Below, piece after piece: positions 16,501 to 59,848 of a stretch of 64,000 bases of DNA. The stretch covers positions 280,396 to 344,395 of the forward strand of contig JAKMXF010000315.1 in NCBI GenBank assembly GCA_024704765.1, given 5' to 3'. Within the stretch, counting starts at the first letter, position 1. Each line of letters opens with the position of its first letter. The stretch is from Oopsacas minuta. Taxonomy: Eukaryota; Animalia; Porifera. The position numbers were made by a program, and so were the translations under genes. The notes below the pieces were generated by a model that was not told where the DNA came from, ran no database searches, and saw only the letters and a list, made by a program, of their open reading frames with translations.

Positions 16501-19500
16501 ATTGAATTTTATTTACTTTCTTGATACACAAGATGAATACATAGTTATACGAGCATTTCAAAATTGCATACTTTAAATCCTTTCTTTGACAACGGACAAA
16601 CAAACAAACAACAGATGAGATTTATAATATAGAGTACACAAATATATTTCGTCCACAATATAGTAGTAGTTACATTGTCTGATTACTAATTACATTTATA
16701 GTAAAAACGTAGTTACAGGTTTGACAAATTAGAATCTGAAGAATTCGCTATTGGAACTATTGTATCCTAATTCAACTGGGTTGGATAGTTAGCTTATATC
16801 ATATGATTACCACAATTCGTAAACCCCCACATCTGATAGGTTAATACATGTTGACATCTATCTCAGAGAGCTTTCGAGATATCGCTTAGATCTTAGAAAT
16901 TGTTCCTAGGTTTATCATCTTCCACACATGCCAAATTCACGTTTATATCTCTTACTAGTTCCTCGCTCAATTTCGAACAAAATAACCAAAAACAAACCAT
17001 CAACAAATTGATATATTATCGTATGTATATAGGTAAATTCGCATAAGCACAATTGTATATGTAGTGGTGATCAAAGCAAATTTAGCTTAATGTCTTTGTG
17101 GTTACCTTTCAGTCAACTTGTCATACTTTGTTATAATTGAATTCATATTTGTATCTATTTCATTGAATTGTCTGAATTTTATTGGAATTTTCAGTTCAAA
17201 AGATTTGCACAATTATTTGTAATCTATTGCATTCCATATATTATTCATTATCATTGTATGGGACATTATTTGCTAATGTATTTATTTATCATTTCTATTT
17301 TCAGATAATACCTCTGCTGACAAGATTGATTCTTTCGACTCTTGGGAGCAGAAACTTTTTGTTTCAAAGCACTCAGAAACGTTAATTCAACTAAGCTGTG
17401 TTGAAAGAATTCTACCATCTGGATGGAAGTGTTCAAAGTGTCAGATGACTGAGAATTTATGGCTGAATCTAACTGATGGTTCTATTCTTTGTGGCCGTAG
17501 GCAATTTGATGGTAGTGGCGGTAATAATCATGCTTTAGAGCATTATTCTTTGACCAAGTAATGTCGCCAATTATGTACCATTGACTATGTTCAGTGTTTC
17601 TTGTTCAAAGATTTGTTTTGTCTGCCCTACCAATTTGAGATTCCTCACTTAAATACCTAGATTATTGGAGTAATCCGATCTAGCAGCAAATGATTTTTTG
17701 ATTACAATTGTAAATACTTCCAGCTTGTCTGGTACTTGCATAGTAATCCAGCTTAGGGTCTGAAGGCCGCATTATCGTTGGAAGTTTGAATCACTCGTAA
17801 GTATGGAGTTGCGATTGAGTTCTAAAATTGGTAAAAGAAACTTAACATAATTCAAGACTGGTTTACCAAACATAATTATAATTGTTTGTTTCTATATGTA
17901 GCCTAACAGATACATGTGATAGTTTGGGGCAAAAACCTAATTCCCACTCAATAGAATATCGTATAAGACAGGGGTGCTCAAACTTGTAAATCTACGGGCC
18001 ACTTTAAAATTGGGCTCGCATTACGGGCCACAAATAATATATCGCCTCTAACTTTAGAAATCAATTTCAAGCTATAGAAATTGACCTCATATTGCTTAAC
18101 AATGTATTCTACTTATAAATTCAGGTTATTGACTTAAATCATAATCTTTTCAATGGTTTCGAATCATTTGATGTTTATTTTGAAATCAGCTCGTTTTTTA
18201 GCAAGTGGACAATAGTACTAAACCTAGATTTAGGGTATACTATGTATTGTCCATAGTAGAATAACAATGTAAAAAAATCTCGCCATTTCAATTTAGGTTC
18301 TGTATCCTACGTTATGCTTATACTTTTGAGGCTCTAATAATTGATAGAATTCTAAATGCTAACTAGAGTTACCGATACTTTATTCATACTCGGAACATAA
18401 ATGCAATTGTAGATTATCTATCATTATTCTGTATTGTGTTTAGAATAATAATTTTTATCTGACAATTGAAGCACGTGAATTTACTGTATATACAACGGGT
18501 ATTCATTTAATTCGTAAATATTAGAATATTTATATTATTTAAGTGAGCTAAGGCACAAATTCTACTATAAATTTTCAAGGTAGTCTCCCTTGTGCTCAAC
18601 TACAGGCTTTAAACGCTCTATCCACTTGAAAAATGTTTTATTATACTCTTCTTGTGGTATGCCTCTGAAGCACCATTGGATGACCCTTCCAATTTGCATC
18701 TGTTCTCCAAAACTGTACCTGCTAGGTGCTTTTTGAGCCCATCGAAGAGCCAAAAGTCGCACCGTGCTAAGTTAAGGCTATATGGTGGATGTTCCAATTC
18801 CTTAAGACCTATGGAAGCAATGTTTTCCTTAACTTCCTTTAATTTGTACGGTCTGGCATTATCATGCAAAATTTTGATTCCTCTGAGATCCGTGGCTGGC
18901 GACGCTCAATCTATTGTTTTTGATTTACGGAAGAAAAACTGTACATAAAAGTGTCCAGTAACTGTTTGCCCCTTAAGGGTACAGATTTGGCAGGCTGGGC
19001 CATGTGCATCGAAAATATGGTGTATGTTAATTAGCGAGCCCAATGATCCGGTCTTGGTAGTGCTGGAGGGGATCTCCCTTTTACAATCCATACCTTGTTC
19101 TGTTCTTTGCGAGTTGGCTCTGAATATCTTGTCCACTTCTCATCACTCATCATCGGTACATATTTCAAATAGTCGCCTCTCATCACATTGGTCATACTTT
19201 TCAAGCAGTTTTTTGCAATTCTTTCCTGGATCTTCTTTTTGGGTCTGATTCAACAAATGTGGGACCCAACGTGAGCAAACGTTGGACATACCAAATTGCT
19301 TGGTCAGAATTGCATGAACACTTCCCGTTGACAAAGTTAGGCTGGTAGCTAACTGCTCTATCGTAATATGAGGATCAGAGTCACACATTTCAGTTATAAG
19401 AGTAATATTGTTTACAGTGGTAGCAATTATAGGTTGCCCCATCCGAAGGTCATTTTCAACCAACACTCTACCTTCACGGAAACAAAAACTCCACTTTTTA

Positions 19501-34500: not shown

Positions 34501-37500
34501 CCCATTTCCTATTCGTTTCCTTCCTTTTATTCCTTAAGATTGCATACCTTTTGAGAACAATTGCCCTTGTCAGGCTTTTATTGTGGTATTTCACATTTTA
34601 CAAATATACTTTACAGCAAGATTTAATTTGCAAAGTCTCAAATTTGTATGTCTTTGGACATAATTTAGTAGAAAATATAAAGATGAAGTCGCAGCTAAGT
34701 TTATCCAAAGAAAGGTAAAATGAAATTCGCCAAAAGCAGATCTTTCTCCAATAACAGGACATTTCGGATATCTTTGTTGAATTTCGCTAAAAAATTGATA
34801 AAAGTCAATTTTTTTGGACTTTTATTACAATTTTTCTCTTGATATTTGTCACTCAAAGTTCGCTGATTCATAAAATACATTTTGACAAACTGGGAAAGGG
34901 TGTATTTACCAACCTTTTGACACTAGAATACTGCTTATATCCAATTTGAATTATTTTCATCATTTCTTGTCACCTGATTAGGATTTCGCGTCGAAAATCG
35001 TTTCAAACTAATTATTTTGCTCAATTTCTCCACCACACCTTTTTCCCTCTAGATTGGAGTTTAGGTTTCTACTTTTTATAGTCCGCAGGATCTGTTCTGC
35101 AAGTATTTTCAGACTTTCTCTTTCCAAATATGTGTTCAGATCTAATATTTGCTTAGAACTTGTCCAAGTCTTCTGCTCCAAGATTGGCCAGATTGTGTAA
35201 CTCATAAGATTCTGATCGGGGCTGGAGGGTGGTCATTCTACTTTGGAAATGAAATCAATTTCCTCTCACGAAACTACTGCTCTAACTCCTATTTCCAATC
35301 TTCGAACGACCAAAGCCCTTCACTTCTTTATCCAACATTAACGTACTATAAGTTTTCTAGTTATTTTTACTCCAGATGGGTCAAAAATATGATTTGTGCT
35401 GGCATTTTCGGAGATACCGCACCATTCTATGACGAAGCCGACTCTGCGTTCTTAATACATCGAAGTTTTTCCGAGATCTCTTGGACGCTGTTTGAGATTA
35501 TGTGATCATTCTGAGGATTGGACACCTCCTCACTAGTGAATAGTTTATTACCTGAAACAATATATGATCCCAAGCATTGGACACCAAACATCAACTTCTT
35601 TGTAGCCGTCTTTCTTACATTCCCTCAGTAACATATGAACCATTTTCTTTTGAGAGACTTTAATCTTAGGTCCTTGTGAACAATATATCCAATGGATATA
35701 GAGCTTATTCCAATATAACACTAAATGTTCTTGATCAACACCGCGGATAACGACCGATTCTTTGCTTAATCTTCGCCTTTAGCTCTCCCGTCCTTACAGT
35801 GCGCCAAATCGAGCTCTATCTTTCAACTTCCGGACTGATATTATCTTTGTATTGTGCGATATATCTATTTCTATCGCATTGTCACTTTGAAGTATTTTCA
35901 TAGGCTCATTTGCAGGCCTTTGCGGCCTCAAAACCAAGTAATGTCACAATTTGTAAATTTTACCATAATTGGTATAGTAATTGATTAAATATACATCCTG
36001 TGGAAAAATTTCAATTTGGAATTCAAATACTATAATAGCGATGTGTATAATATAATGGTAAACATTGGGGGATAACCTTTGCTACACCCTGTAAATGAAG
36101 CGCCTGCAATTGATCGAAAATACAATTGTCGATGAATTATAAACCAAACAAATGAAACTGTAAAATGTATATTCAGAAACGTTTCATTGTATAAATAAGT
36201 GTACATTTCACCAATTGCTTATTCGAATACGTACCTATCTCTAACTTTATTATCATTCTTATCATGGACTACGTTTTCGGAATTTATAAACATAAAAGGG
36301 GAACAATTTTCACTACTCCAGATGGTTTTAGATACACTCAACACAAAGCCAGACCTGGGATAATCCATCTCCGATGTGTTTTACATCAGAAAGTAAAGTG
36401 TAAAGGATCTGCAAAGTTAAACTCTGAATCCAATACTATTGATCCTTTAAAACACCATAACCATCTAGTTTCTGATTATAATACTGAAGTTTTAGTTCTA
36501 AAATCTAAATGTGTTTCTGCGGCGAGATCTTCACGTGAAAGGTTATCTAAGTGTTCAAAGATGTTGTTCGTGATGATTCTTCTGCAATTGATGTGTCATA
36601 CAAAACTTTAGAGAGTGCAATGTATCGAGCAAGAAGAGAAATTGAACCACCTATTCCTAAAGGTGCTACTGAATTTTGTCAACTTATTGTATCATCTGAT
36701 TTTGGTATATACTACAAAGGTGAAGTACAAGTAGGTTGTGAAACTGGTGTGATATTTTTCTCAGATAAGATAAAGATTTCTCTCTCTGAAGTGGATCACA
36801 TTTATTTTGATGGTACATTTTAGACGGTACCATCCCAGTTCTATCAATTGTGGACTATTTTCGCCCGCTTTGGACGCAATGTACTGCCGGTTATCCATTG
36901 TCTTCTTACATCCAAGCATGAGGAAATCTATACAGTTGTTCTAGCTAGAATACACGAACTTGTTCCGAAACTAAAACCTATCCATGGAATGTCTGATTGG
37001 GAGAAGGGGGCTAGAAATGCTGTAAAGAGACAGTTCCAAGGTATTCATCTACGAGGATGTCATTTTCACTACACTCAATGTATTTGGCGGAAAATACAAA
37101 AGTTAAGTCTGTCAACTGTTAATCACAATAATGCAGATTTTTAAAAACTAGTTAGATCATTTATGACTCTTCCTTTCCTTCCTGAAGATCAGATTATATC
37201 TGTATTCAATCAACTGGAAGTAAGAGATTTGCCTCTTAGTGAAGTTCATATGAATCAATATACAATTTTTAGAAGTATTTAAGATGTCAATGGATTATTT
37301 CTATTCCTAGGAACGAATTATCTATTTTTAACTGCCACATGTCACAAATAATGGAGCAGAGAACTACCACTGTAGATTAATAAAGGACATCGTGGTCTCT
37401 CACCCGCGTGTATGGTCTTTTGTTGAAATCCTCAATAAGATGATACAGGATACAGATTTAGATATTCAGCGCCCAGCAAAAGGCATTAACATTACTCGGA

Positions 37501-40500
37501 GTCGTAAGTTGAAGGGCATCCAAAATGATTCGTTTCGTGCTCAATGCAAAGAAAAGCATGTGTCGGGAGAATATAGTCCAACTCAATATGTGGATGTAAT
37601 AGCTAGCTCTATCCACCCGGATACAAACCCAATAAACCTACTTGGAGATTGCCCAGATGAGTCATCGTCGATGAAGAGCCTGAAGATGATATTCAGGTTA
37701 ATTGTTGTGTGTGCTTACTTCAGAGAGCAACAACAGTCCTATTTCTTCCTTGTAGGCATGCACAATGTTGTGAGGAATGCAGTGCATCCTTGGAACAATG
37801 TCCAATATGCAGGTGCAATATAGAGCAAAGATTCAAAATTTTTACTTAATTTTTTCTCTCCAATATATTTTACTGTTGTTTTTCATTTTTCCTTCAATAT
37901 GTTTTTCAATTCATTAATTAAATCATTATATTCTCAATAATATTAGTCAAGGTTAGGATAAATCAATTCTAGAGTTGATCATTTGCAAACCTTAAAAATT
38001 CTATCAATTGCAAACGTTGTCAGTCGATCAATTGCCGCGCCCCCCCTGTAAATATATGAGTCACTTTATTATTTGATTTGGGAAGTACTTTCCAACAAAA
38101 CTTAGGCGAAGCTCTCTTACTTTTGAAATAGAGCCCTGCTTTGCTGGAGCCCATCTCTCTAGTATGGCAAGACCGCAGAATCGAGATTTTAACACCTGTT
38201 CATACATTTTGCCTGCAGTATTTGGTTAGCAGTTTCTTTAGTTCATTTACCTTCCTTATACACATTTCAATCCACCTTATGAAATTGATATGCCTAATAA
38301 ATGCACTGTTGTTGGGTGTCGTCTCTGCAATTCTGATGGTCCAATGAACTTCTTATTTCACTTCTTTAAGAAAGTCTCTCCAGGAAAGGTGGATTGTCTT
38401 TTAATAAAGAAAAGATTGGGGCAACAACTTCTAGTACAACTATCTATATATATATATTGATTTTTTATGGCAAGAATGTAGTTCTGGACTCTAAGAAACA
38501 GTTGCTCAACTATTCACTCTTCATTCAATTTGTTCATTATCTCTCCCCAAAAGTCAAAGAGTCATAACACATAAGCCTAGAAACCACCTGTTTAAAGAAT
38601 ATATCAACTAGACAAATTCCATCTATTGTAAACTAAATTCAAATTCGATTCTCTCTAAAACATATGTATAACCACTTCTTATGAATATATGAATTGAAGA
38701 TAGACTTCAATCTTTACCAGAGATCGATTCAGTTATTAGGCTTAGAACAGATTTATAGATATACATATCTAAGTGGTAGTTTATTAGCCGCCAATAATGA
38801 TCCTGAAATATCGTTCTGCAAAGGGTGAACCACTTATGGGTAGCACAACTGGCCCGGTGTTACAGCCATGATTATACCCCATCCTCAATCAGCTCTAGTA
38901 TGAAGTGGGCTAGCCCATAACATAACCCCAGGGCGGTATAATCTGGGCCAGCCCAGAATATACCCTGGTATATTCTAGTGGGTATATACTTTCGGGCTAC
39001 AACAGCGCGCCTTAACGATTTATATCCATGCAAATATATATGTGTAGTTACCATCTATCTAGATTTTGAATGTGGCCACTATTTTCAGTATCAAGGTTGT
39101 GACCTGGTCAAAACCTGGTCTGGAAAATTCTGCCCAGGTTTGACTTGGTCACATTGCATTACTGCCACGTCCCAGACGTCTCATTAAAAACATAAGAAAT
39201 TCTTTATTAGCTTCTTGATATTTTCAAGTTCTTGTGAGTCATCTCGTATTCCAGCAAATATCTATCCCACCATTCCCAGCGGGCGAAATTCATTTGTCGC
39301 GTCTACATACAGGGTGACAAATAAGTTCTGTCCCATTGAAAATTTATTATAACTAAGCTATGAACTAAGATATTGGCTTGAAATTATGCTATAACTTAGC
39401 AAACTAAATATAGATTCATAATATATTCAATTGTTCGATATAGCCCCCTTTCTTTTTGATGACAGCTCTTAGCCGCTTGGGGACGGACTCAACAGCGGCA
39501 CGCAACTTTTCCTGCGGGATTTTTGCCCATTCTCGGGGTAAAGACGTTTTTAGAGACTTGATACTCTTATGGGAAGTAGTGCACGCATTTGTCTCCAATA
39601 TCGACCACAACGAGAAGTCCATCGGGTTGAGATCTGGGCTGGAAGGAGGCCATTCCTCCTTGGAGATGAAGTCTGGGATATTGTTTCGTAACCACTGTTG
39701 GTTGACTTTCGCTGTGTGGGCTGGCGCACCGTCTTGCTGGAATAAAAATGGACGATTATTGAACATGGTCTTACCAAGGCCTCTCACTATTGGGTCTAAA
39801 ACGAGCTCCTGATATTTAACAGCGTTTATTTTTACGCCCGGTGGGATGAAAACCAGTGGGGTACGGCCTTTTGCGGACACCCCCGCCCAAACCATCACTG
39901 ACTGAGGATGCTGAACTCTTTGGACGCATCGATACTCTTGTGGTATGGAAGATGGAGAAGAGACAATACTCGATCGTTTTGACGATTGTACGCCTGCTCG
40001 ACCGTGAATAATTTCTCATCCGAGAATAAAATTTCATCAAGGCCAAAACTTACGAGCCGGGCGAGTAAGGCCTTGCTCCTGGCTAGTCTCTTTTCTTTAA
40101 TCTGTGGCGAAATAAAATGAACCTTCCTCTTTTTGTAAGGAAATAGGCCCATATCGCTCTTCACAATTGTTCGGACCGATTCTCTTGATATTTTGAGTTC
40201 TAGCGCCATTTTTCGCATCGAACGTTGCGGATTTCGCTGAATCCGACTACGGATAACCTTTCTCTTCTGGGTAGTGGTCGCAGATGTTGGACGTCCACTT
40301 CTCTGCCTGTCTGAGGTACTACCAGTGTCCTTATATCTTTTAATAGTACGATATATCAATTTCCTGCGCGACATGGGGAAATTGAGAATCTTCAATATTT
40401 CGCTTTGGCTTTTCCCTTGCAAATATAATTTAACAATAGCCACCCTATTCTTCTCCATTTTGCCTAGAATCTTTTAGCTTGTTCAGAATGTACAGATTAC

Positions 40501-43500
40501 CATTGAATACTTTAAATATATACATTGTTACTTATCTTACACTATAACTGTTTAATCTGGTTCTTTAATAAGGAACTACACTACATCAAACATATGGGAC
40601 AGAACTTATTTGTCACCCTGTACAATCCATTCACCTGATAACAAACAACCTGCACACCTAAACTATTTGCAAAAGTTAGTTACTCTATTCTTCATCTTGG
40701 CAACATCACAGAATCCGCTCCCTTGGCATTAGCCACTTTCGAATCTACCACAACTACGGTACTTCCCCAATACCTTCCCATAAATACTTCACGCCAACAT
40801 TTCTGAAACTTTTTCCATCATCCTAATCATGTCGGTATTCCGTGATATCAAATGATGATAAATTATTTTTTGCTGAATTGATAGAGTGCCTTATCTATGG
40901 TGAGATTCAAAACAACTTGGTTTAAGAATATCGACATTCATGACACTTTTTTCACTATACTGCTATACCGGCTTATGTAGTGATTTACTAGAGAGTAGAT
41001 ATCAATTTGTTATTACTGGGAATTTAATCCATGGTACAAGACATTTATCAATTATTACTAAAATTTATGATAGTGATGCGAATAAACCTAGATAAATATA
41101 TTCTAATATATATATATTTGAATACGAATATGGACATACGAAATCATATTCCATATTGGTCATTTGTTAGATCGTCATTATACATATCAAAATTAATAGA
41201 TTGTCCTGAAAATTTAAGATAATTAAACATAGGTATTTTTAATATACTTGTTATACACTTGTGAACACAGTCAGCTAATATTAATTCGGAAACATCGATT
41301 CAGGAATTTGTCCCGATTTTTATTGCTTGGACAGTGGCTGATAATGTGAATGAAATCCGAAAATTGTGACAATGACGTCATAATTTCATCATCAATGTGG
41401 ACTTTCGTCCAAGACTCGAACTTTCCCGACTCTGGCCCAAAGTTCCTTGTATGCGGACTTTTGCCCTGAATCTCTTCCAGTTTGTTCAAACAATCCAGAA
41501 TATTCAAACACATTGATATACTCTCCCTTACCAAAATTATTCGTAAAATTCCATGGAAAATACTCAACTAGTTATAGGGAAGTATTCCGTGATCCAGTTA
41601 GCAGGTTACACGCCGCCTATCCAGTTAACTGCTAGGATTAAGCATATTCGGTTTGCGGAATAGTTTCATTTCCACTAACATAACCTAAAGTTTGTGAGGT
41701 AGTAACTTATATATATACGAATTTTGCTAGTTGGTGATTTGTTAAATATTACATTCTAGGTCCGTATTATTGAATTTAATAGATTTTTATGATACAATGT
41801 CATAACGATTGCATATAATAACTATTTATGCAATAGTATTTAATTTAATGTTAATTAGATATTGCGATTTTGATTAGATAACTATCCCCCATCTGCCACT
41901 TGTTCACGTCCTTTGCCATGGTGGCAATTGAAAAAATGCCCAGCCGACAGAATGACAGTGTAGCTCAGGATTATTTGTTTGTTTTATGATTACATGTGAT
42001 TTGGCATATAGATTTAGATTTGAAAATGTGAAATTTGAAATCTACCTACTCGATTACGACTAACTAACATTTACAATGAACTCTCTAGCATGATTTATTT
42101 TGTGCAATAAGGTTTGAAAATATACTTATTCATGTGGTGAATCTTCGAATTTGTAACTTTCACACTCTGAAATTCACAAATTCGGACTCTACGTCCCAAT
42201 TACCCCTCACAGCATGTTGAAGCCTAATCGCTAGCGTGCGTTTGTATTCACATAGAAGGGTTTGAAACTCTGATTAATCACCAAAGAGGTTTGAAATATT
42301 TACTTTAGAAAAAGTTATTACCCTAGGTGCAAATCTCTTATACAAAATATTTATTTTTCTACAAATTTTCATTTTAATTGTGCTGCTATATTTCCCACGG
42401 GCGCGCGGACTGCGGACGTACATACTTCGCACATCATCCATGTCATTAGGGGATTTCCCTATAGGAACTTTGTAATAGTATTGGTACACGTAGATATTTA
42501 TTCATCTATTTGTAGATTGATTTGAATATTCACATTGGGGAGGCTTCTATTATCCAAGAATCAGATTCAAATTTGAAGCCACTTTGTGGTTCAGGTTATA
42601 CTGGTTTGAATAACCTTGGCAATTCTTGCTATATTAATTCTGTAATTCAAGTCCTCTTCTCCATTCCACGTTTTTATGAATACTTCTATGGTACTGTTGA
42701 TTACTTGACATTATTTGAAGAAAAGAACGTAATATTTGACCTGATATTTCAAATAAAAAAATTGGCTCGTGGAATATATTTTAGAGAGTATTCATCAGAA
42801 TCATCGTTGCCTTCCAGCACTATTTTTGATTCGCTTCCAAATCAAGCCGTTATTCCAAAACAGATTCTGACAGATTTCGAGAACAACCCAATATCACTGT
42901 TGCATTTTCGGACTGCGATTGGCAAGGGTCATCGTGAATTTTCATCAAAAAAACAGCAAGATGCACAGGAGTTTCTACTATATTTATTGAATACTATTGA
43001 TAGACATCTTTTATCCTCAAAAACTAACCCTTGTGATATATTTCGGTTTAAGATACAGGATCGTTTAGAATGTCTACAAACTCATCATGTTCAGTATTCT
43101 ATACGAAATGAATCTATCCTGAGCTTACCAATTCCAAAATTGTCTAGTACTATCCAATCAAAGGTAAAATTTCTGTAATTTTGTTAGTCTGGAATCTATG
43201 ATTTATATATATCTTTTCAATGTACTTATAAATACATTGCTTTATACTATGGGCGTTCAATAAGTAGTCGTTATCACATTATAATTCTAGATTTTTCTAG
43301 CATAATTGTGTAGTCAGTGATGGAGTTTCTCAGAGTATTCCCCTTCGTGCTGTAAAACCAATCTCAGCCTTTTTATCCAATCGAAAAATACTTTTTGTAG
43401 TCTTCGGCAGGTATACCTTTCATATACTGGAAAATCGCCGATCCTATCTGAGCTTGACTCTCATATTTTCTGCCTGATAGATGTTTCTTTAGCTTTGGAA

Positions 43501-58500: not shown

Positions 58501-59848
58501 GATTCAAAAATCTTTTTCAGAACACCCTATTTTTGAATTAACTGGTGAAAATTATCAAACATGTGCTATCAATGGTCACTACTAAAACTCTAGGACTTGC
58601 GAACTTCAACATGACAAATTTTGTTGTAGGTACTGCGGTACAATTATTGTAGGTTGCTTGAAGCTAAAAATCAGCCCCAAGTTTTTCCAATCTCTTTGGG
58701 AGTTTCCCTTCTTGGATTCTATTAGTCAGTTGCAGAGTCAACTATATTTATATTGGCGGAGCTAGCGGAATGCAAAAGGTTGCTGGCAAACGTGGGCTAC
58801 TGTTAGGGACTCCAATTGCAACCCATGATTCCTGGGGATGCATGCAATTTGTGAATTTTTAGGGTTCCCGCCACCCCTGTGACAACTTCACAGAGTGGAT
58901 GGTTAGCTAAGTCTCAGTGTATACATTTATTCATAACTTCTTGATCAGAATTATTTCATGTTCTTTTTATAGGTGACAGATCAAATAATCATTGAAGATA
59001 ATTTTACAAATATGCCCACAGAGATTTTGCCAAAGCCACAAGTAAGTATCAGCGAATGTCTTGATTGTTTTCAAACCCCTCATATTATTTCCGATTTTCT
59101 ATCACCGGTTAATCACAAATATGGTAATGCATCCAAGACCTCTACATTTTCAACTTTCCCCGAATACTTATTTATTCATTTCGGTAAATTCTATTTAGGA
59201 GACGATTGGATGCCCAAAAAACTAGATATTGAAATTTTAGGGACAGAAAACGTTTTAGATATCGAATTTCTACGCTCTCCAAATATAATCACCAAAGAGA
59301 CTATAATGCCAAGCGATGTAAGCGATGTTAATTTAGAAATACTTACCAAATTGTTAGAGGTCGGTTGCGATGAAACATTATCCCGGAAAGCCTTGTCAAT
59401 GTTTAAAAATGATTTTGAATCAGCACTTTCGTGGGTCTTAAATCCAGAATCCTCATTCAAAATTGAGGAAGAGCCAGAGAACAGTTTAATTGAATCATTG
59501 GTTGACTTTGGATTTACCCATGCTCAGTCCGTATATGCTCTAAGAAAGACTGGTAATAATGTAGAAAGAGCTGTTGATTATTTGTTTTCACACACTGAAG
59601 AAGTTTCTTCGATGTTATCTTCAGATAATCTACCAAAAATCGATATCGCTGATGGAACAGGACATTATACTTTAGTATCTATAATTTCGCATATCGGTTC
59701 TTCATCTATGAGTGGCCATTATGTTGCTCATATCCTTAAAGAAGGTAAATGGGTTTTATTTAATGACGATAAAGTTACCGAATCAAAGAGTCCTCCATTT
59801 AAACTAGGTTACCTTTATCTTTACAAACGCTATTGTGACAAAAAGTAG
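1057..59848 (+). CDS. USP5: Ubiquitin carboxyl-terminal hydrolase 5/13 family (isopeptidase T), spliced CDS join(1057..1501,17305..17557,32852..33020,42516..43163,58973..59848), 796 aa
   Basis: The five exons join in frame with GT-AG boundaries (intron phases 1,2,0,0) and total 2391 nt. Domain order is N-terminal cryptic ZnF-UBP, ZnF-UBP, Cys box, two UBA domains, His box, which is the USP5/USP13/Ubp14 architecture. Confidence 0.95.
3610..5470 (-). mobile_element. hAT (Buster/Charlie-type) transposon relic, one end visible
   Basis: TIR-like CAGTATTTCCCAACCT at 3610, preceded by CTCTAGAG (Charlie-type target). Minus-strand fragments include [13 protein letters not shown] and [11 protein letters not shown]...KQRNR...DLRLFL (hATC dimerisation region). 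Multiple stops and frameshifts. Confidence 0.8.
6093..6151. repeat. 7-bp minisatellite, TCCA(G/A)T(A/G) x8
   Basis: Direct read: tccagta tccaata tccagta tccaatg tccaatg tccagta tccagtg tccagta tcc. Confidence 0.85.
8523..8623 (-). mobile_element. ~100-bp miniature Helitron-like element (family A related)
   Basis: The minus strand starts TCAATATGATTAAA..TTGTTTGTCTG..GTCCGTTG like family A. It ends with hairpin CGCGA-GTTCG-TCGCG, then CTCG|T. Confidence 0.4.
8640..8864 (-). repeat. Family A Helitron-like repeat, part left of the Chapaev3 insertion
   Basis: Matches 30860-31030 (gaaattcggattcagcgt..ttacccctg..ccaaaagtgt). Confidence 0.6.
8865..11099 (-). mobile_element. Chapaev3-type (CMC superfamily) DNA transposon, full length, transposase pseudogene ~9120..10796
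   Basis: ~130-bp imperfect TIRs begin CACTGTCCAACAAA, with a 3-bp TAA TSD on both sides. The transposase has N-terminal FCYICG, GDLKV, YCCLLC [C(2)C], LHIKLG, HFLHSH [H(3-4)H] and [12 protein letters not shown]. It carries in-frame stops and frameshifts. Confidence 0.8.
11100..11305 (-). repeat. Family A Helitron-like repeat, part right of the Chapaev3 insertion (5' TC end, ACAG/AAAC microsatellite)
   Basis: Homologous to 16410-16633, 25276-25490, 31030-31218 and 45483-45700. The minus strand starts A|TCTATATTATTAAA. Confidence 0.65.
12903..13920 (+). mobile_element. hAT (Buster/ZBED5-like) relic, 5' half
   Basis: TIR-like CAGTGGTTCCCAACCTG at 12903. Fragments [31 protein letters not shown] and [12 protein letters not shown]. 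Confidence 0.75.
14280..15400 (+). pseudogene. hAT transposase relic, DUF659-like type
   Basis: [45 protein letters not shown] and VVTRWNS occur in the expected order, with many lesions. Confidence 0.7.
16024..16087. mobile_element. 64-bp MITE-like remnant
   Basis: Ends CAGTGGT / ACCACTG with a GC-richer interior. No TSD resolved. Confidence 0.35.
16410..16633 (-). repeat. Family A Helitron-like repeat copy
   Basis: ccaaaatgtgaaaatcggattca...tttgacaacggacaaacaaacaaac...tataatataga. Uninterrupted at the site where the 8865 element inserted in the other copy. Confidence 0.65.
17305..17557 (+). CDS. USP5: USP5 exon 2 (ZnF-UBP domain, first part)
   Basis: Acceptor atttctattttcag|. Translates [41 protein letters not shown]. 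Donor AA|GTAATG at 17558. Not in the supplied ORF track. Confidence 0.95.
17969..19929. mobile_element. Non-autonomous hAT element (host of a nested mariner)
   Basis: TIRs CAGGGGTGCTCA / TGAGCACCCTTG (1 mismatch). 8-bp TSD GTATAAGA / GCATAAGA (7/8). Confidence 0.75.
18490..19760 (-). mobile_element. mariner (DD34D) relic nested in the hAT MITE; ends approximate
   Basis: HTH fragment STVKKW..FREGR, WVPHLL, EICTDDE, HDNARP and [12 protein letters not shown] with 34-residue D-D spacing. Frameshifted. Confidence 0.85.
21050..21330 (-). pseudogene. Tc1-like transposase fragment
   Basis: [20 protein letters not shown] resembles the Tc1 motif QQDNDPKHTSK..K.W. Heavily decayed. Confidence 0.45.
22006..22078 (-). 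tRNA. Degenerate tRNA-like sequence (tRNA pseudogene or SINE head), anticodon ambiguous
   Basis: 73 nt with a perfect 7-bp acceptor stem GTCCTGC/GCAGGAC, A-box-like TGGTCTAGTGAG and B-box GGTTCGAATCC. A T4 run lies 4 nt downstream. The D, anticodon and T stems each contain mismatches. Confidence 0.5.
25276..25490 (+). repeat. Family A Helitron-like repeat copy
   Basis: A|TCTATATAG..gtttgtttatttgtccgttgtcaagg..gctgaatccgattttc, the reverse complement of the 11100 and 16410 copies. Confidence 0.65.
25658..26966 (+). mobile_element. mariner relic nested in the last codons of the hAT transposase
   Basis: Imperfect TIRs CGAGGGGCACTCGAAATGTTTTG / CAAAACTTTCGAGTCCCCTTTA. ORF pieces from 25815: [34 protein letters not shown] and [16 protein letters not shown]. 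Confidence 0.85.
27785..28534 (+). mobile_element. MITE family B, copy 1 (750 bp, Tc1/mariner-pogo type, TA TSD)
   Basis: TIRs (G/C)AGTGGAAGCCGCTTAAT..GGGAC with TA on both sides and many TTAATCGG subterminal repeats. Removing it restores the hAT frame [18 protein letters not shown]. Confidence 0.85.
30740..31218 (-). repeat. Family A Helitron-like repeat, long copy
   Basis: Colinear with 8640-8864 plus 11100-11305. Ends ..aaacaaacaaac..attataga|tt. Confidence 0.65.
32852..33020 (+). CDS. USP5: USP5 exon 3 (ZnF-UBP second part and linker)
   Basis: Acceptor atttcgtttag|. Translates [28 protein letters not shown]...[10 protein letters not shown]. Donor CAG|GTGTGT at 33021. Not in the supplied ORF track. 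Confidence 0.95.
33053..33238. mobile_element. 186-bp MITE (Tigger/pogo-like, TA TSD)
   Basis: 24-bp TIRs (T/C)AGTAGAACTCGGATAAGACGTAC / GTACGTCTTATCCGAGTTCTACTG, flanked by TA, with internal GTACGTCTT repeats. Confidence 0.85.
35010..35920 (-). pseudogene. Decayed maT-like (DD37D-type) transposase
   Basis: NPQNDHI, PSGVKI and [24 protein letters not shown] parallel the intact element at 39310-40620. Confidence 0.65.
36097..38044 (+). mobile_element. Mutator-like element (MULE), full length; FLYWCH-MULE-RING transposase pseudogene 36264..37849
   Basis: Perfect 9-bp TSD CCTGTAAAT (36088-36096 and 38045-38053). Imperfect G-terminal TIRs share GCAATTGATCGA. Motifs LRC-x7-C-x18-[31 protein letters not shown], then a C3HC4 RING. 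Confidence 0.88.
38290..38450 (+). pseudogene. THAP-domain relic (P-element/THAP9-like N-terminus)
   Basis: [11 protein letters not shown]...FHFF..SLQERWI..KDW fits the start of the THAP C2CH consensus. Frameshifted, and the distal C/H residues are not seen. Confidence 0.5.
38851..39011. mobile_element. Possible ~160-bp MITE
   Basis: Ends GGCCCGGTGTTACAGCC / GGCTACAACAGCGCGCC form an imperfect inverted repeat, with internal GGGC(T/C)AGCCC palindromes. No TSD resolved. Confidence 0.3.
39310..40620 (-). mobile_element. maT/mori-like DD37D Tc1/mariner element, nearly intact (transposase 40458..39416, one frameshift)
   Basis: Perfect 27-bp TIRs CAGGGTGACAAATAAGTTCTGTCCCAT with TA TSD. Motifs FSDEKLF, VMVWAG and QQDGAPAH-...[12 protein letters not shown] with 37-residue spacing. 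Confidence 0.93.
42516..43163 (+). CDS. USP5: USP5 exon 4 (catalytic Cys box)
   Basis: Acceptor catctatttgtag|. Contains [22 protein letters not shown] and [19 protein letters not shown]. Donor AAG|GTAAAA at 43164. Confidence 0.95.
43247..44579 (-). mobile_element. mariner (DD34D) element, 1333 bp, decayed
   Basis: TIRs sharing CGTTCAATAAGTAGT, flanked by TA. Motifs [28 protein letters not shown] and [12 protein letters not shown] with 34-residue spacing. Confidence 0.88.
45483..45810 (+). repeat. Family A Helitron-like repeat copy
   Basis: A|TCTATATTATTAAATCTC..tttgtctgtttgtccgttgtcaagg..aggggtaactaagtacgctg. Confidence 0.65.
45830..47859 (+). mobile_element. hAT (Buster/ZBED5-SCAND3-like) relic; ends tentative
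   Basis: [61 protein letters not shown] and LPFATTYL...[13 protein letters not shown]. Candidate ends are CAGTGGTC / ACTACTG. Confidence 0.8.
48843..52444 (-). mobile_element. Transib-like (RAG1-related) transposon relic; transposase ~51520..49700; ends tentative
   Basis: Minus-strand motifs in order: [23 protein letters not shown] (frameshift), [33 protein letters not shown]. Candidate termini CACAGTGGTCT (48843) and AAACCGCTGTG (52444). A 5-bp TSD was not confirmed. Confidence 0.55.
55116..55227. repeat. ~57-bp tandem duplication (2 copies)
   Basis: cgaaaaa(g)tatcaaaata(c/t)aacgagaag..caacacattatag..tcc is repeated once. Confidence 0.75.
55500..58200 (-). mobile_element. hATm-like transposase relic split by a ~1.3-kb insert (~56480-57790)
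   Basis: Right piece [27 protein letters not shown]. Left piece [48 protein letters not shown] and HLSGDLV..IF. Confidence 0.6.
58973..59848 (+). CDS. USP5: USP5 exon 5 (UBA1, UBA2, His box, stop)
   Basis: Acceptor ttctttttatag|. Contains DWMPKKLDI, two UBA-like segments and [30 protein letters not shown]. Ends at TAG. Confidence 0.95.
   Translation: MTDQIIIEDNFTNMPTEILPKPQVSISECLDCFQTPHIISDFLSPVNHKYGNASKTSTFSTFPEYLFIHFGKFYLGDDWMPKKLDIEILGTENVLDIEFLRSPNIITKETIMPSDVSDVNLEILTKLLEVGCDETLSRKALSMFKNDFESALSWVLNPESSFKIEEEPENSLIESLVDFGFTHAQSVYALRKTGNNVERAVDYLFSHTEEVSSMLSSDNLPKIDIADGTGHYTLVSIISHIGSSSMSGHYVAHILKEGKWVLFNDDKVTESKSPPFKLGYLYLYKRYCDKK

Follow-up and report, generated by a model that had tools for sequence, protein, structure and literature searches.

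Few transposases known to us carry an accessory catalytic domain, and those that do illustrate how a mobile element manages its host. RAG1 is the only well-studied DDE recombinase (so called from its D, D and E catalytic residues) known to us to contain a ubiquitin ligase (E3) domain; this domain, a RING, ubiquitylates both itself and histone H3, and its role is still debated. Among the Mutator-like elements (MULEs), KI-MULEs carry a Ulp1 protease. The subject of the present analysis is a MULE of the glass sponge Oopsacas minuta: a 1.95-kb DNA transposon at 36097–38044 of a 64,000-nucleotide stretch of contig JAKMXF010000315.1 (forward strand, positions 280,396 to 344,395; assembly GCA_024704765.1), hereafter the window, to which coordinates refer unless a contig is named. 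The copy in the window is dead and without function. Its siblings and relatives encode, in a single open reading frame (ORF), a FLYWCH zinc finger, a MULE catalytic core and a C-terminal RING, and this RING is almost certainly an integral and selected part of the transposase.

In a full-text literature search, outside which lay Repbase and Dfam, only Dupeyron et al. 2019 (PMC6446971) was found to mention a RING in a MULE. These authors list a RING zinc finger in two copies of the 'Ghost' MULE of Myzus cerasi (their Table S2). The Ghost RING forms a separate 420-bp ORF in one frameshifted M. cerasi copy, and neither terminal inverted repeats (TIRs) nor target-site duplications (TSDs) were found for Ghost (PMC6446971). 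Table 1 of the same study gives a C3HC4 RING in the Phytophthora element MuDR-37_Pi and an OTU domain in MuDR-6_HM (PMC6446971). The FLYWCH-MULE-RING layout is already on record and is also present in public databases, while no analysis of the RING as an E3 module was found in the literature searched. An initial reading of the stretch from its letters alone (the sequence-only reading) had left it to be checked whether RING-tailed MULEs are described. They are, as Ghost and MuDR-37_Pi testify, but in passing, with the RING entered as a zinc finger and not as an E3. Beyond that record, the present analysis supplies the complete structure of the element, its single ORF, the class of the RING, data on selection and a breadth that runs from sponge to insect.

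Element structure and copies in the Oopsacas minuta genome

A DDE domain, TIRs, dispersed copies and TSDs of 8–9 bp (about 8–11 bp is usual for MULEs) that differ at each insertion, all of which identify a MULE, were found in the window copy or its family. The element is bracketed by the exact 10-bp direct repeat CCCTGTAAAT (36087–36096 and 38044–38053). The 9-bp TSD of the sequence-only reading is acceptable in that sibling copies place the TSD of the family at 8–9 bp. The TIRs are imperfect and about 21 bp long (GAAGCGCCTGCAATTGATCGA versus GGGGGCGCGGCAATTGATCGA), with a perfect 12-bp core, GCAATTGATCGA, at 36106–36117 and 38024–38035. An alignment of seven copies shows that one 25-bp subterminal repeat unit, present in the siblings just after the 5′ TIR, is missing from the left end of the window copy.

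Searching the assembly that contains the window (61.46 Mb, 365 contigs) at the DNA level returned at least seven near-full-length copies (L001–L007) of 94%–97% identity, or 92%–97% with fragments included, each with its own TSD of 8–9 bp. The observation cannot be due to chance, because at least seven copies this similar each possess a TSD of their own. Aligned with their flanks, all copies share the termini GAAGCGCC...GCGCCCCC. One further family in the assembly is 68% identical to the window element.

All seven copies of the window family (family A) are damaged. In copy L003, however, a 437-codon frame is open from the FLYWCH methionine to past the DDE core, and in copy L006 a 302-codon frame is open across the C-terminal half of MULE, the acidic linker and the RING to the final KIFT. 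The siblings are broken at different places and their frames complement one another; therefore, the ancestral product was a single intronless protein of about 530 amino acids. A fusion of about 525 residues had been proposed at the outset, and it gains support from the overlapping frames of L003 and L006 as well as from intact ORFs elsewhere in the genome. A profile search of the O. minuta genome gave 88 matches, of which approximately 26 reach the RING in frame and four are full length without a stop (Table 1). The two intact ORFs that were checked (L018 and L021) encode 530 and 532 amino acids, and both contain MULE and RING by Pfam; FLYWCH passes Pfam in L021 but not in L018. Copies that lacked the RING, or carried it out of frame, had been named in advance as a case against the fusion; instead, L006 and the ORFs of the sister families carry it in frame.

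The intact ORF on contig C301 belongs to a sister family, family B (Table 1), whose copies share 98%–99% identity; their TIR arrays measure about 185 bp, and three copies have 8-bp TSDs. Its terminus, GGGGTGCCTGCA..., resembles the end of the window family. Judged from these sequences, family B looks young and may still be active in O. minuta. The stop-free FLYWCH-MULE-RING ORFs on C188, C99 and C122 belong to subfamilies other than family B.

Some copies have entered the gene annotation. Over its full length, the 387-aa LOD99_869 ('hypothetical protein') matches copy L004 (C222:1099205–1101142) at 100% identity, and LOD99_860 ('RING-type domain-containing protein', 488 aa) is a gene model on copy L020 that skips the region around an internal TGA. 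Both models are drawn on decayed transposon copies.

Coding region and decay of the window copy

Pfam matches to FLYWCH, MULE and zf-C3HC4_3 were obtained on separate frame pieces of the window copy, all above the curated cut-offs (Table 1). The finger, core and RING described in the sequence-only reading are thus all present, and translation returns the RING peptide exactly as quoted there, with its ligand spacing of C-x2-C-x12-C-x-H-x3-C-x2-C-x6-C-x2-C. The estimate of about five lesions was slightly low: six were counted, namely four 1-bp deletions and two premature stops (Table 1). The four deletions are private to the window copy, which diverges by 2.4% from the majority of copies. Three-frame translation places its RING out of frame with the rest of the coding region.

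Conservation and selection on the RING

Mean pairwise identity is 60.0% in the RING and its tail, 57.9% in the DDE core and 29.8% in the acidic linker. The ratio of nonsynonymous to synonymous substitution (dN/dS) within the window family is uninformative, because its seven copies decay neutrally after insertion; intact ORF pairs were therefore used. These pairs were drawn from related subfamilies, more distant pairs being saturated at synonymous sites. In the two unsaturated pairs, dN/dS was 0.08 and 0.09 in the RING, 0.13 and 0.18 in the rest of the transposase, and 0.38 and 0.49 in the linker. Neutral evolution of the RING codons, which would have spoken against the fusion, is not what these values describe; they denote strong purifying selection. 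On the sequences compared, selection on the RING is at least as strong as that on the catalytic core.

RING class and predicted structure

In sequence searches of the PDB, the best matches to the RING are cIAP1, cIAP2 and BIRC7 (E 6e-9 to 1.4e-8), followed by CGRRF1, IDOL and XIAP. BIRC7, cIAP2, cIAP1, IDOL, XIAP and MDM2 are all dimeric RING E3s. The eight zinc ligands are invariant in 64 aligned RINGs, and in 96 of 99 RING-bearing relatives no more than 16 residues separate the domain from the C-terminus. Among those 96, conservation extends to V or I two positions after the first ligand cysteine (C1+2; 88 proteins), proline after C7 (87), arginine after the last cysteine (85) and an aromatic residue exactly 11 positions after that cysteine (74), with a tail of 11–14 residues in 89. 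In printed alignments, the aromatic position and the tail length equal those of cIAP2 and BIRC7. In dimeric RING E3s, the residues conserved here bind the ubiquitin-conjugating enzyme (E2) and prime the E2~ubiquitin conjugate across the dimer. The window RING itself carries CCVC, CPIC and the linchpin arginine; in its family, the C5–C7 loop has six residues, and the tail, which ends in KIFT, is one or two residues shorter.

An AlphaFold model of one relative, P0008, has a mean pLDDT (predicted local distance difference test) of 78.6, with the RING at about 80 and the linker (residues 453–474) disordered at below 50. The modelled RING superposes on BIRC7 with a root-mean-square deviation (rmsd) of 1.7 Å, and on cIAP2, IDOL, cIAP1, XIAP and MDM2 as well, the values ranging from 1.4 to 2.7 Å; the best match to the modelled core is the IS256-family transposase ISCth4. 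Both the top PDB sequence matches and the BIRC7-like fold bear out the IAP-type assignment made in the sequence-only reading.

Prediction of a RING homodimer gave a score of 0.37 against 0.00 for the best control, a value that may reflect recall of solved IAP and MDM2 dimers. Among 30 proteins solved as one-chain pairs, 21 attained the mark applied to this score, against 0 of 23 single-chain structures. Contacts agree between runs to at least 86%, the pLDDT of the partner is at least 82, and the predicted interface comprises tail residues 62–67 together with residues 25, 27 and 31–35, that is, the tail and the central strand.

Relatives in other animals

A word-based protein search found more than 20 proteins of 512–551 amino acids at 40%–47% identity that contain PF10551 and PF13920, often with PF04500; they align colinearly from FLYWCH through to the final residue. 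An exhaustive profile search yielded 1,672 cluster representatives at E ≤ 1e-30, and a Pfam scan covered the 71 longest among the top 150 of these. MULE was found in 68 of the 71 and zf-C3HC4_3 in 38, several apparently RING-less relatives having variant or truncated RINGs. The D, D and E columns are conserved in 69–70 of the 71 proteins, or 68–70 when the C..H column is included. No SWIM finger was found by Pfam in the pieces of the window copy, in the two intact ORFs checked or in the relatives scanned.

The named relatives are from Aphidomorpha (Daktulosphaira, Adelges, Acyrthosiphon, Aphis, Macrosiphum, Metopolophium and Myzus), so that aphids, phylloxera and adelgids share the architecture; these proteins are annotated as uncharacterized or 'RING-type domain-containing'. 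In a rough FastTree phylogeny, midpoint-rooted for drawing only and from which no polarity was drawn, the window family falls in a well-supported clade of sponge type, with the aphid proteins across the deepest split. RING-bearing rows lie on both sides of that split, and the regular-expression labels used to mark them under-call RINGs (for example, in P0080 and P0155).

Many intact MULE-RING elements, 40%–66% identical to the sponge families, were also found in the ENA assemblies ERZ25069837, ERZ25072730 and ERZ25071281 (L016, L017 and L030–L032), whose records are filed as metagenomes. On three assemblies other than that of O. minuta, the ORFs lie between long TIR arrays of tandem subrepeats, with lengths of 285–334 bp among them. 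The ENA contigs are eukaryotic, measure up to 1.3–2 Mb and contain animal genes (fn3/I-set, actin and NHL); they are probably host DNA of other sponges. A gene for an OTU-family cysteine protease (L030:3742–4419, − strand) was considered as possible cargo of one such element and rejected, as it sits 185 bp outside the right TIR array.

Taken together, these findings mark the RING as an ancient and selected module of the transposase, neither cargo nor a fragment captured from a gene, and the clade that bears it is large, spanning sponges, aphids and their kin, and many unassigned assemblies.

One relative differs at its C-terminus. The 975-residue protein of the firefly Photinus pyralis (XP_031358675.1/A0A1Y1M514) retains FLYWCH, the DDE triad and C..H and has, in place of the RING, a HECT domain (Pfam E 1.1e-10) with an HTCSN catalytic motif. 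Against PDB sequences, the HECT part gave no match at E ≤ 0.001, and its assignment rests on Pfam and the HTCSN motif. Several introns interrupt the gene (P0228, a near-identical genome copy of P0168; VVIM01000761.1, L033:3001–9455), and a UniProt entry based on a transcript matches it; this fusion of transposase and E3 has probably been domesticated. At the sequence level, the exchange of HECT for RING hints at ligase function as the retained property, being the pattern that would then be expected.

Genomic surroundings of the element

Exons of a putative USP-type deubiquitinase gene flank the MULE on the same strand (Table 1). They span more than 42 kb, which for a genome of 61 Mb is unusually long, and the introns are full of transposons; the MULE is thus probably intronic in this long, transposon-filled gene. 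The location looks coincidental because other copies lie at unrelated sites, and the sequence-only reading, which had placed the element inside a deubiquitinase gene and taken this for a probable coincidence, agrees with the zf-UBP and UCH exons found on either side. A Tc1/mariner-type transposase remnant also lies nearby, on the opposite strand; it is frameshifted, because its helix-turn-helix (HTH) and DDE_3 parts occupy two overlapping frames.

Table 1. Positions of the element, its coding segments and neighbouring features in the window, and of intact or family B relatives on the O. minuta contigs named
Feature	Position	Strand	Evidence or remarks
Left target-site duplication, CCTGTAAAT	36088–36096	.	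Direct repeat; exact match runs one base further, to 36087
5′ terminal inverted repeat, GAAGCGCCTGCAATTGATCGA	36097–36117	+	Inverted repeat; alignment of 7 copies
Coding segment 1: start Met and FLYWCH zinc finger (Pfam match 36288–36464)	36264–36548	+	PF04500, E 6.5e-6; ends at 1-bp deletion near 36548
Coding segment 2: N-linker and MULE DDE core	36549–37270	+	PF10551, E 4e-8; three-frame translation; ends at 1-bp deletion near 37270
Segment 2, catalytic residues	D 36809–36811; D 36995–36997; C..H motif (GCHFH)	+	Three-frame translation
Segment 2, premature stops	TAG 36821–36823; TAA 37142–37144	+	Three-frame translation
Coding segment 3, between 1-bp deletions near 37270 and 37336	37271–37336	+	Joined to neighbours in copies L003 and L006
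Coding segment 4: catalytic E (37359–37361, in NNGAENYH), helical post-core region and start of acidic linker	37337–37669	+	Ends at 1-bp deletion near 37669
Coding segment 5: remaining acidic linker, C3HC4 RING (37703–37816), 10-residue tail ending KIFT and stop codon	37670–37849	+	PF13920, E 3.2e-10
3′ non-coding region with subterminal repeats, motif TCGATCAATTGC (e.g. 37978–37993, 38000–38012)	37850–38023	+	Direct and inverted repeat families; copy alignment
3′ terminal inverted repeat (reverse complement GGGGGCGCGGCAATTGATCGA)	38024–38044	−	Inverted repeat; alignment of 7 copies
Right target-site duplication, CCTGTAAAT	38045–38053	.	Direct repeat
USP-type deubiquitinase exon, zf-UBP	17430–17561	+	
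USP-type deubiquitinase exon, UCH N-half	42600–43109 (exon region 42522–43178)	+	
USP-type deubiquitinase exon, UCH C-half	59039–59824	+	
Tc1/mariner-type transposase remnant	39416–40458 (HTH part 39895–40458; DDE_3 part 39416–39898)	−	
Stop-free full-length ORF (L018)	C188:403213–404802		Profile search of genome
Stop-free full-length ORF (L021), family B	C301:468303–469898		Profile search of genome; intact 532-aa ORF
Stop-free full-length ORF	C99:62878–64482		Profile search of genome
Stop-free full-length ORF	C122:201784–203388		Profile search of genome
Family B member (L019)	C325:46766–48361		
Family B member (L020)	C222:1052374–1053969		
Family B member (L022)	C7:118836–120353		

Proposed function of the RING

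In the mechanism proposed, the FLYWCH zinc finger would read the subterminal repeats, and the IS256/MULE-type DDE core would cut and paste the element, leaving TSDs of 8–9 bp. A disordered acidic linker of about 22 residues joins this core to the C-terminal RING of the dimeric IAP/MDM2 class. Two protomers, on pairing their RING tails during assembly of the transpososome, would create the active dimer. The dimer may then recruit an E2~ubiquitin of the UbcH5 (UBE2D) type and ubiquitylate proteins at the site of transposition. The transposase itself would be the favoured target, whether for turnover, for extraction of the stable post-cleavage complex or for control of dosage; alternatively, nearby chromatin or repair factors may be modified, as with the RAG1 RING.

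These steps differ in how firmly they can be held. The account up to and including E3 competence—a dead MULE copy whose selected RING belongs to the IAP/MDM2 class and would be competent as an E3—is considered probable, as is, taken by itself, the competence of the RING as an E3. That self-ubiquitylation or removal of the complex would be its main role is a possibility that must be regarded as doubtful. The wider proposal is that a ubiquitin ligase of their own (usually a dimeric RING of the IAP class, once a HECT) is required throughout a whole, ancient clade of Mutator transposases in animals. Pairing of protomers would switch the ligase on and, by ubiquitylating the transposase or local chromatin, it would bring transposition to completion or restrain it. 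This proposal is plausible, though it falls somewhat short of being probable.

Several points weigh against the E3 reading and the mechanism proposed. The window copy cannot make a protein, and the target presumed for the ligase is pure inference. The homodimer prediction was possibly remembered from solved IAP and MDM2 dimers and speaks of likeness, not of binding. RING-less rows are scattered through the tree and, while several of these are truncated or have variant RINGs, some lineages may do without a RING. Finally, the HECT case is single, spliced and probably domesticated, and may thus say little about mobile elements.

The main rival explanation is that the RING serves as a structural zinc module, for dimerisation or for binding of protein or DNA but without ligase activity, and that it takes the place of the C-terminal SWIM finger of plant MULEs. 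Such a role would accord with the lack of SWIM matches in these proteins and with the entry of the RING by Dupeyron et al. 2019 as a 'zinc finger type', in the column where other MULEs have SWIM (PMC6446971); the predicted homodimer alone would, moreover, give a multimeric transposase a pairing function. Conservation, however, exceeds the zinc ligands, extending to V/I at C1+2, the proline after C7, the linchpin arginine and the aromatic residue at +11, and the HECT domain of one relative is hard to explain if a zinc knuckle sufficed. A purely structural RING is therefore judged unlikely.

Two further readings would remove the RING, or the whole protein, from the biology of the transposon. MULEs are known to capture fragments of host genes (PMC6446971), and the RING is out of frame in the window copy; it might thus be Pack-MULE-like cargo or a swallowed neighbouring gene, with the fusion an accident of decay. 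The RING is nevertheless in frame in sibling and sister copies, occurs in families only 40%–47% identical and in aphid relatives, is C-terminal in 96 of 99 proteins and, at a dN/dS of 0.08–0.09, is the most conserved region. Readings as a captured fragment or neighbouring gene were rejected, given a RING that is in frame, common to families and phyla, and not neutral, and they are rated extremely improbable. Alternatively, the RING-bearing proteins might be domesticated host genes and the window copy their pseudogene. The relatives in aphids and the firefly figure in annotation as ordinary loci, in some cases with several isoforms; introns are present in the firefly gene; and domestication was raised for Ghost, for which no TIRs or TSDs were found, by Dupeyron et al. 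2019 (PMC6446971). The sponge elements, in contrast, possess TIRs, subterminal arrays, copy-specific TSDs and intronless ORFs; copies up to 98%–99% identical occupy unrelated sites in O. minuta, and TIR arrays of 285–334 bp flank the ORF on other assemblies. Domestication as a general explanation is accordingly very improbable, although individual insect loci may be domesticated. The preferred reading remains that of a mobile Mutator transposase with a RING that would act as an E3.

Significance

Ligase chemistry, over a generic zinc knuckle, is argued for by selection, by the residues that activate E2~ubiquitin, by conservation from sponge to aphid and by the HECT replacement in a beetle. Here, a different superfamily (Mutator/IS256) bears its RING at the opposite end of the protein from RAG1. 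If the E3 reading is true, the clade would represent an independent invention of the RAG1-like design of transposase plus E3 and a tractable model for ubiquitin signalling coupled to DNA cut-and-paste. The hypothesis is cheap to test, because the elements are tiny (2–3 kb with one intronless ORF) and intact, apparently young copies are present in the same genome. For annotation, several Oopsacas and aphid proteins entered as 'RING-type domain-containing' or 'hypothetical' are transposases of this clade.

Comparison with known systems

The closest solved fold to the modelled core is that of ISCth4 (6xgx), as expected for the Mutator superfamily (Foldseek E 1.6e-3, probability 1.00), although the match is weak, with template-modelling (TM) scores of 0.29–0.40. 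ISCth4 is prokaryotic and contains neither FLYWCH nor RING.

MULEs with Ulp1 or OTU are precedents for domains of ubiquitin-like systems in Mutator elements. Those domains, however, are proteases that remove modifiers and are usually encoded by separate ORFs, whereas the domain described here is of the ligase type, fused to the transposase and conserved across phyla. With IAP, MDM2 and IDOL (PF13920), the MULE RING has in common the E2-contact residues, the linchpin arginine, the aromatic residue at +11 and a tail that ends the protein; in contrast to them, the MULE protein lacks BIR, p53-binding and FERM domains, and its RING is appended to a transposase.

Ghost likewise comprises Mutator-like elements of invertebrates with a RING by the transposase, and the aphid hosts Acyrthosiphon pisum and Myzus persicae also hold close MULE-and-RING relatives of the sponge proteins. 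Compared by description only, Ghost was reported as incomplete, with its RING read as a zinc finger, whereas the sponge element is complete and its RING forms the C-terminus of a single ORF.

The best functional analogue is RAG1, together with the RAG1-like proteins derived from Transib, in which a DDE cut-and-paste enzyme and a C3HC4 RING are likewise united in one polypeptide. Transib, however, is distinct from Mutator/IS256, and the RING of RAG1 lies at the N-terminus and belongs to another subtype, which adjoins a zinc finger and lacks the activating tail of the IAP class. The RINGs of RAG1 and of the MULEs were acquired independently.

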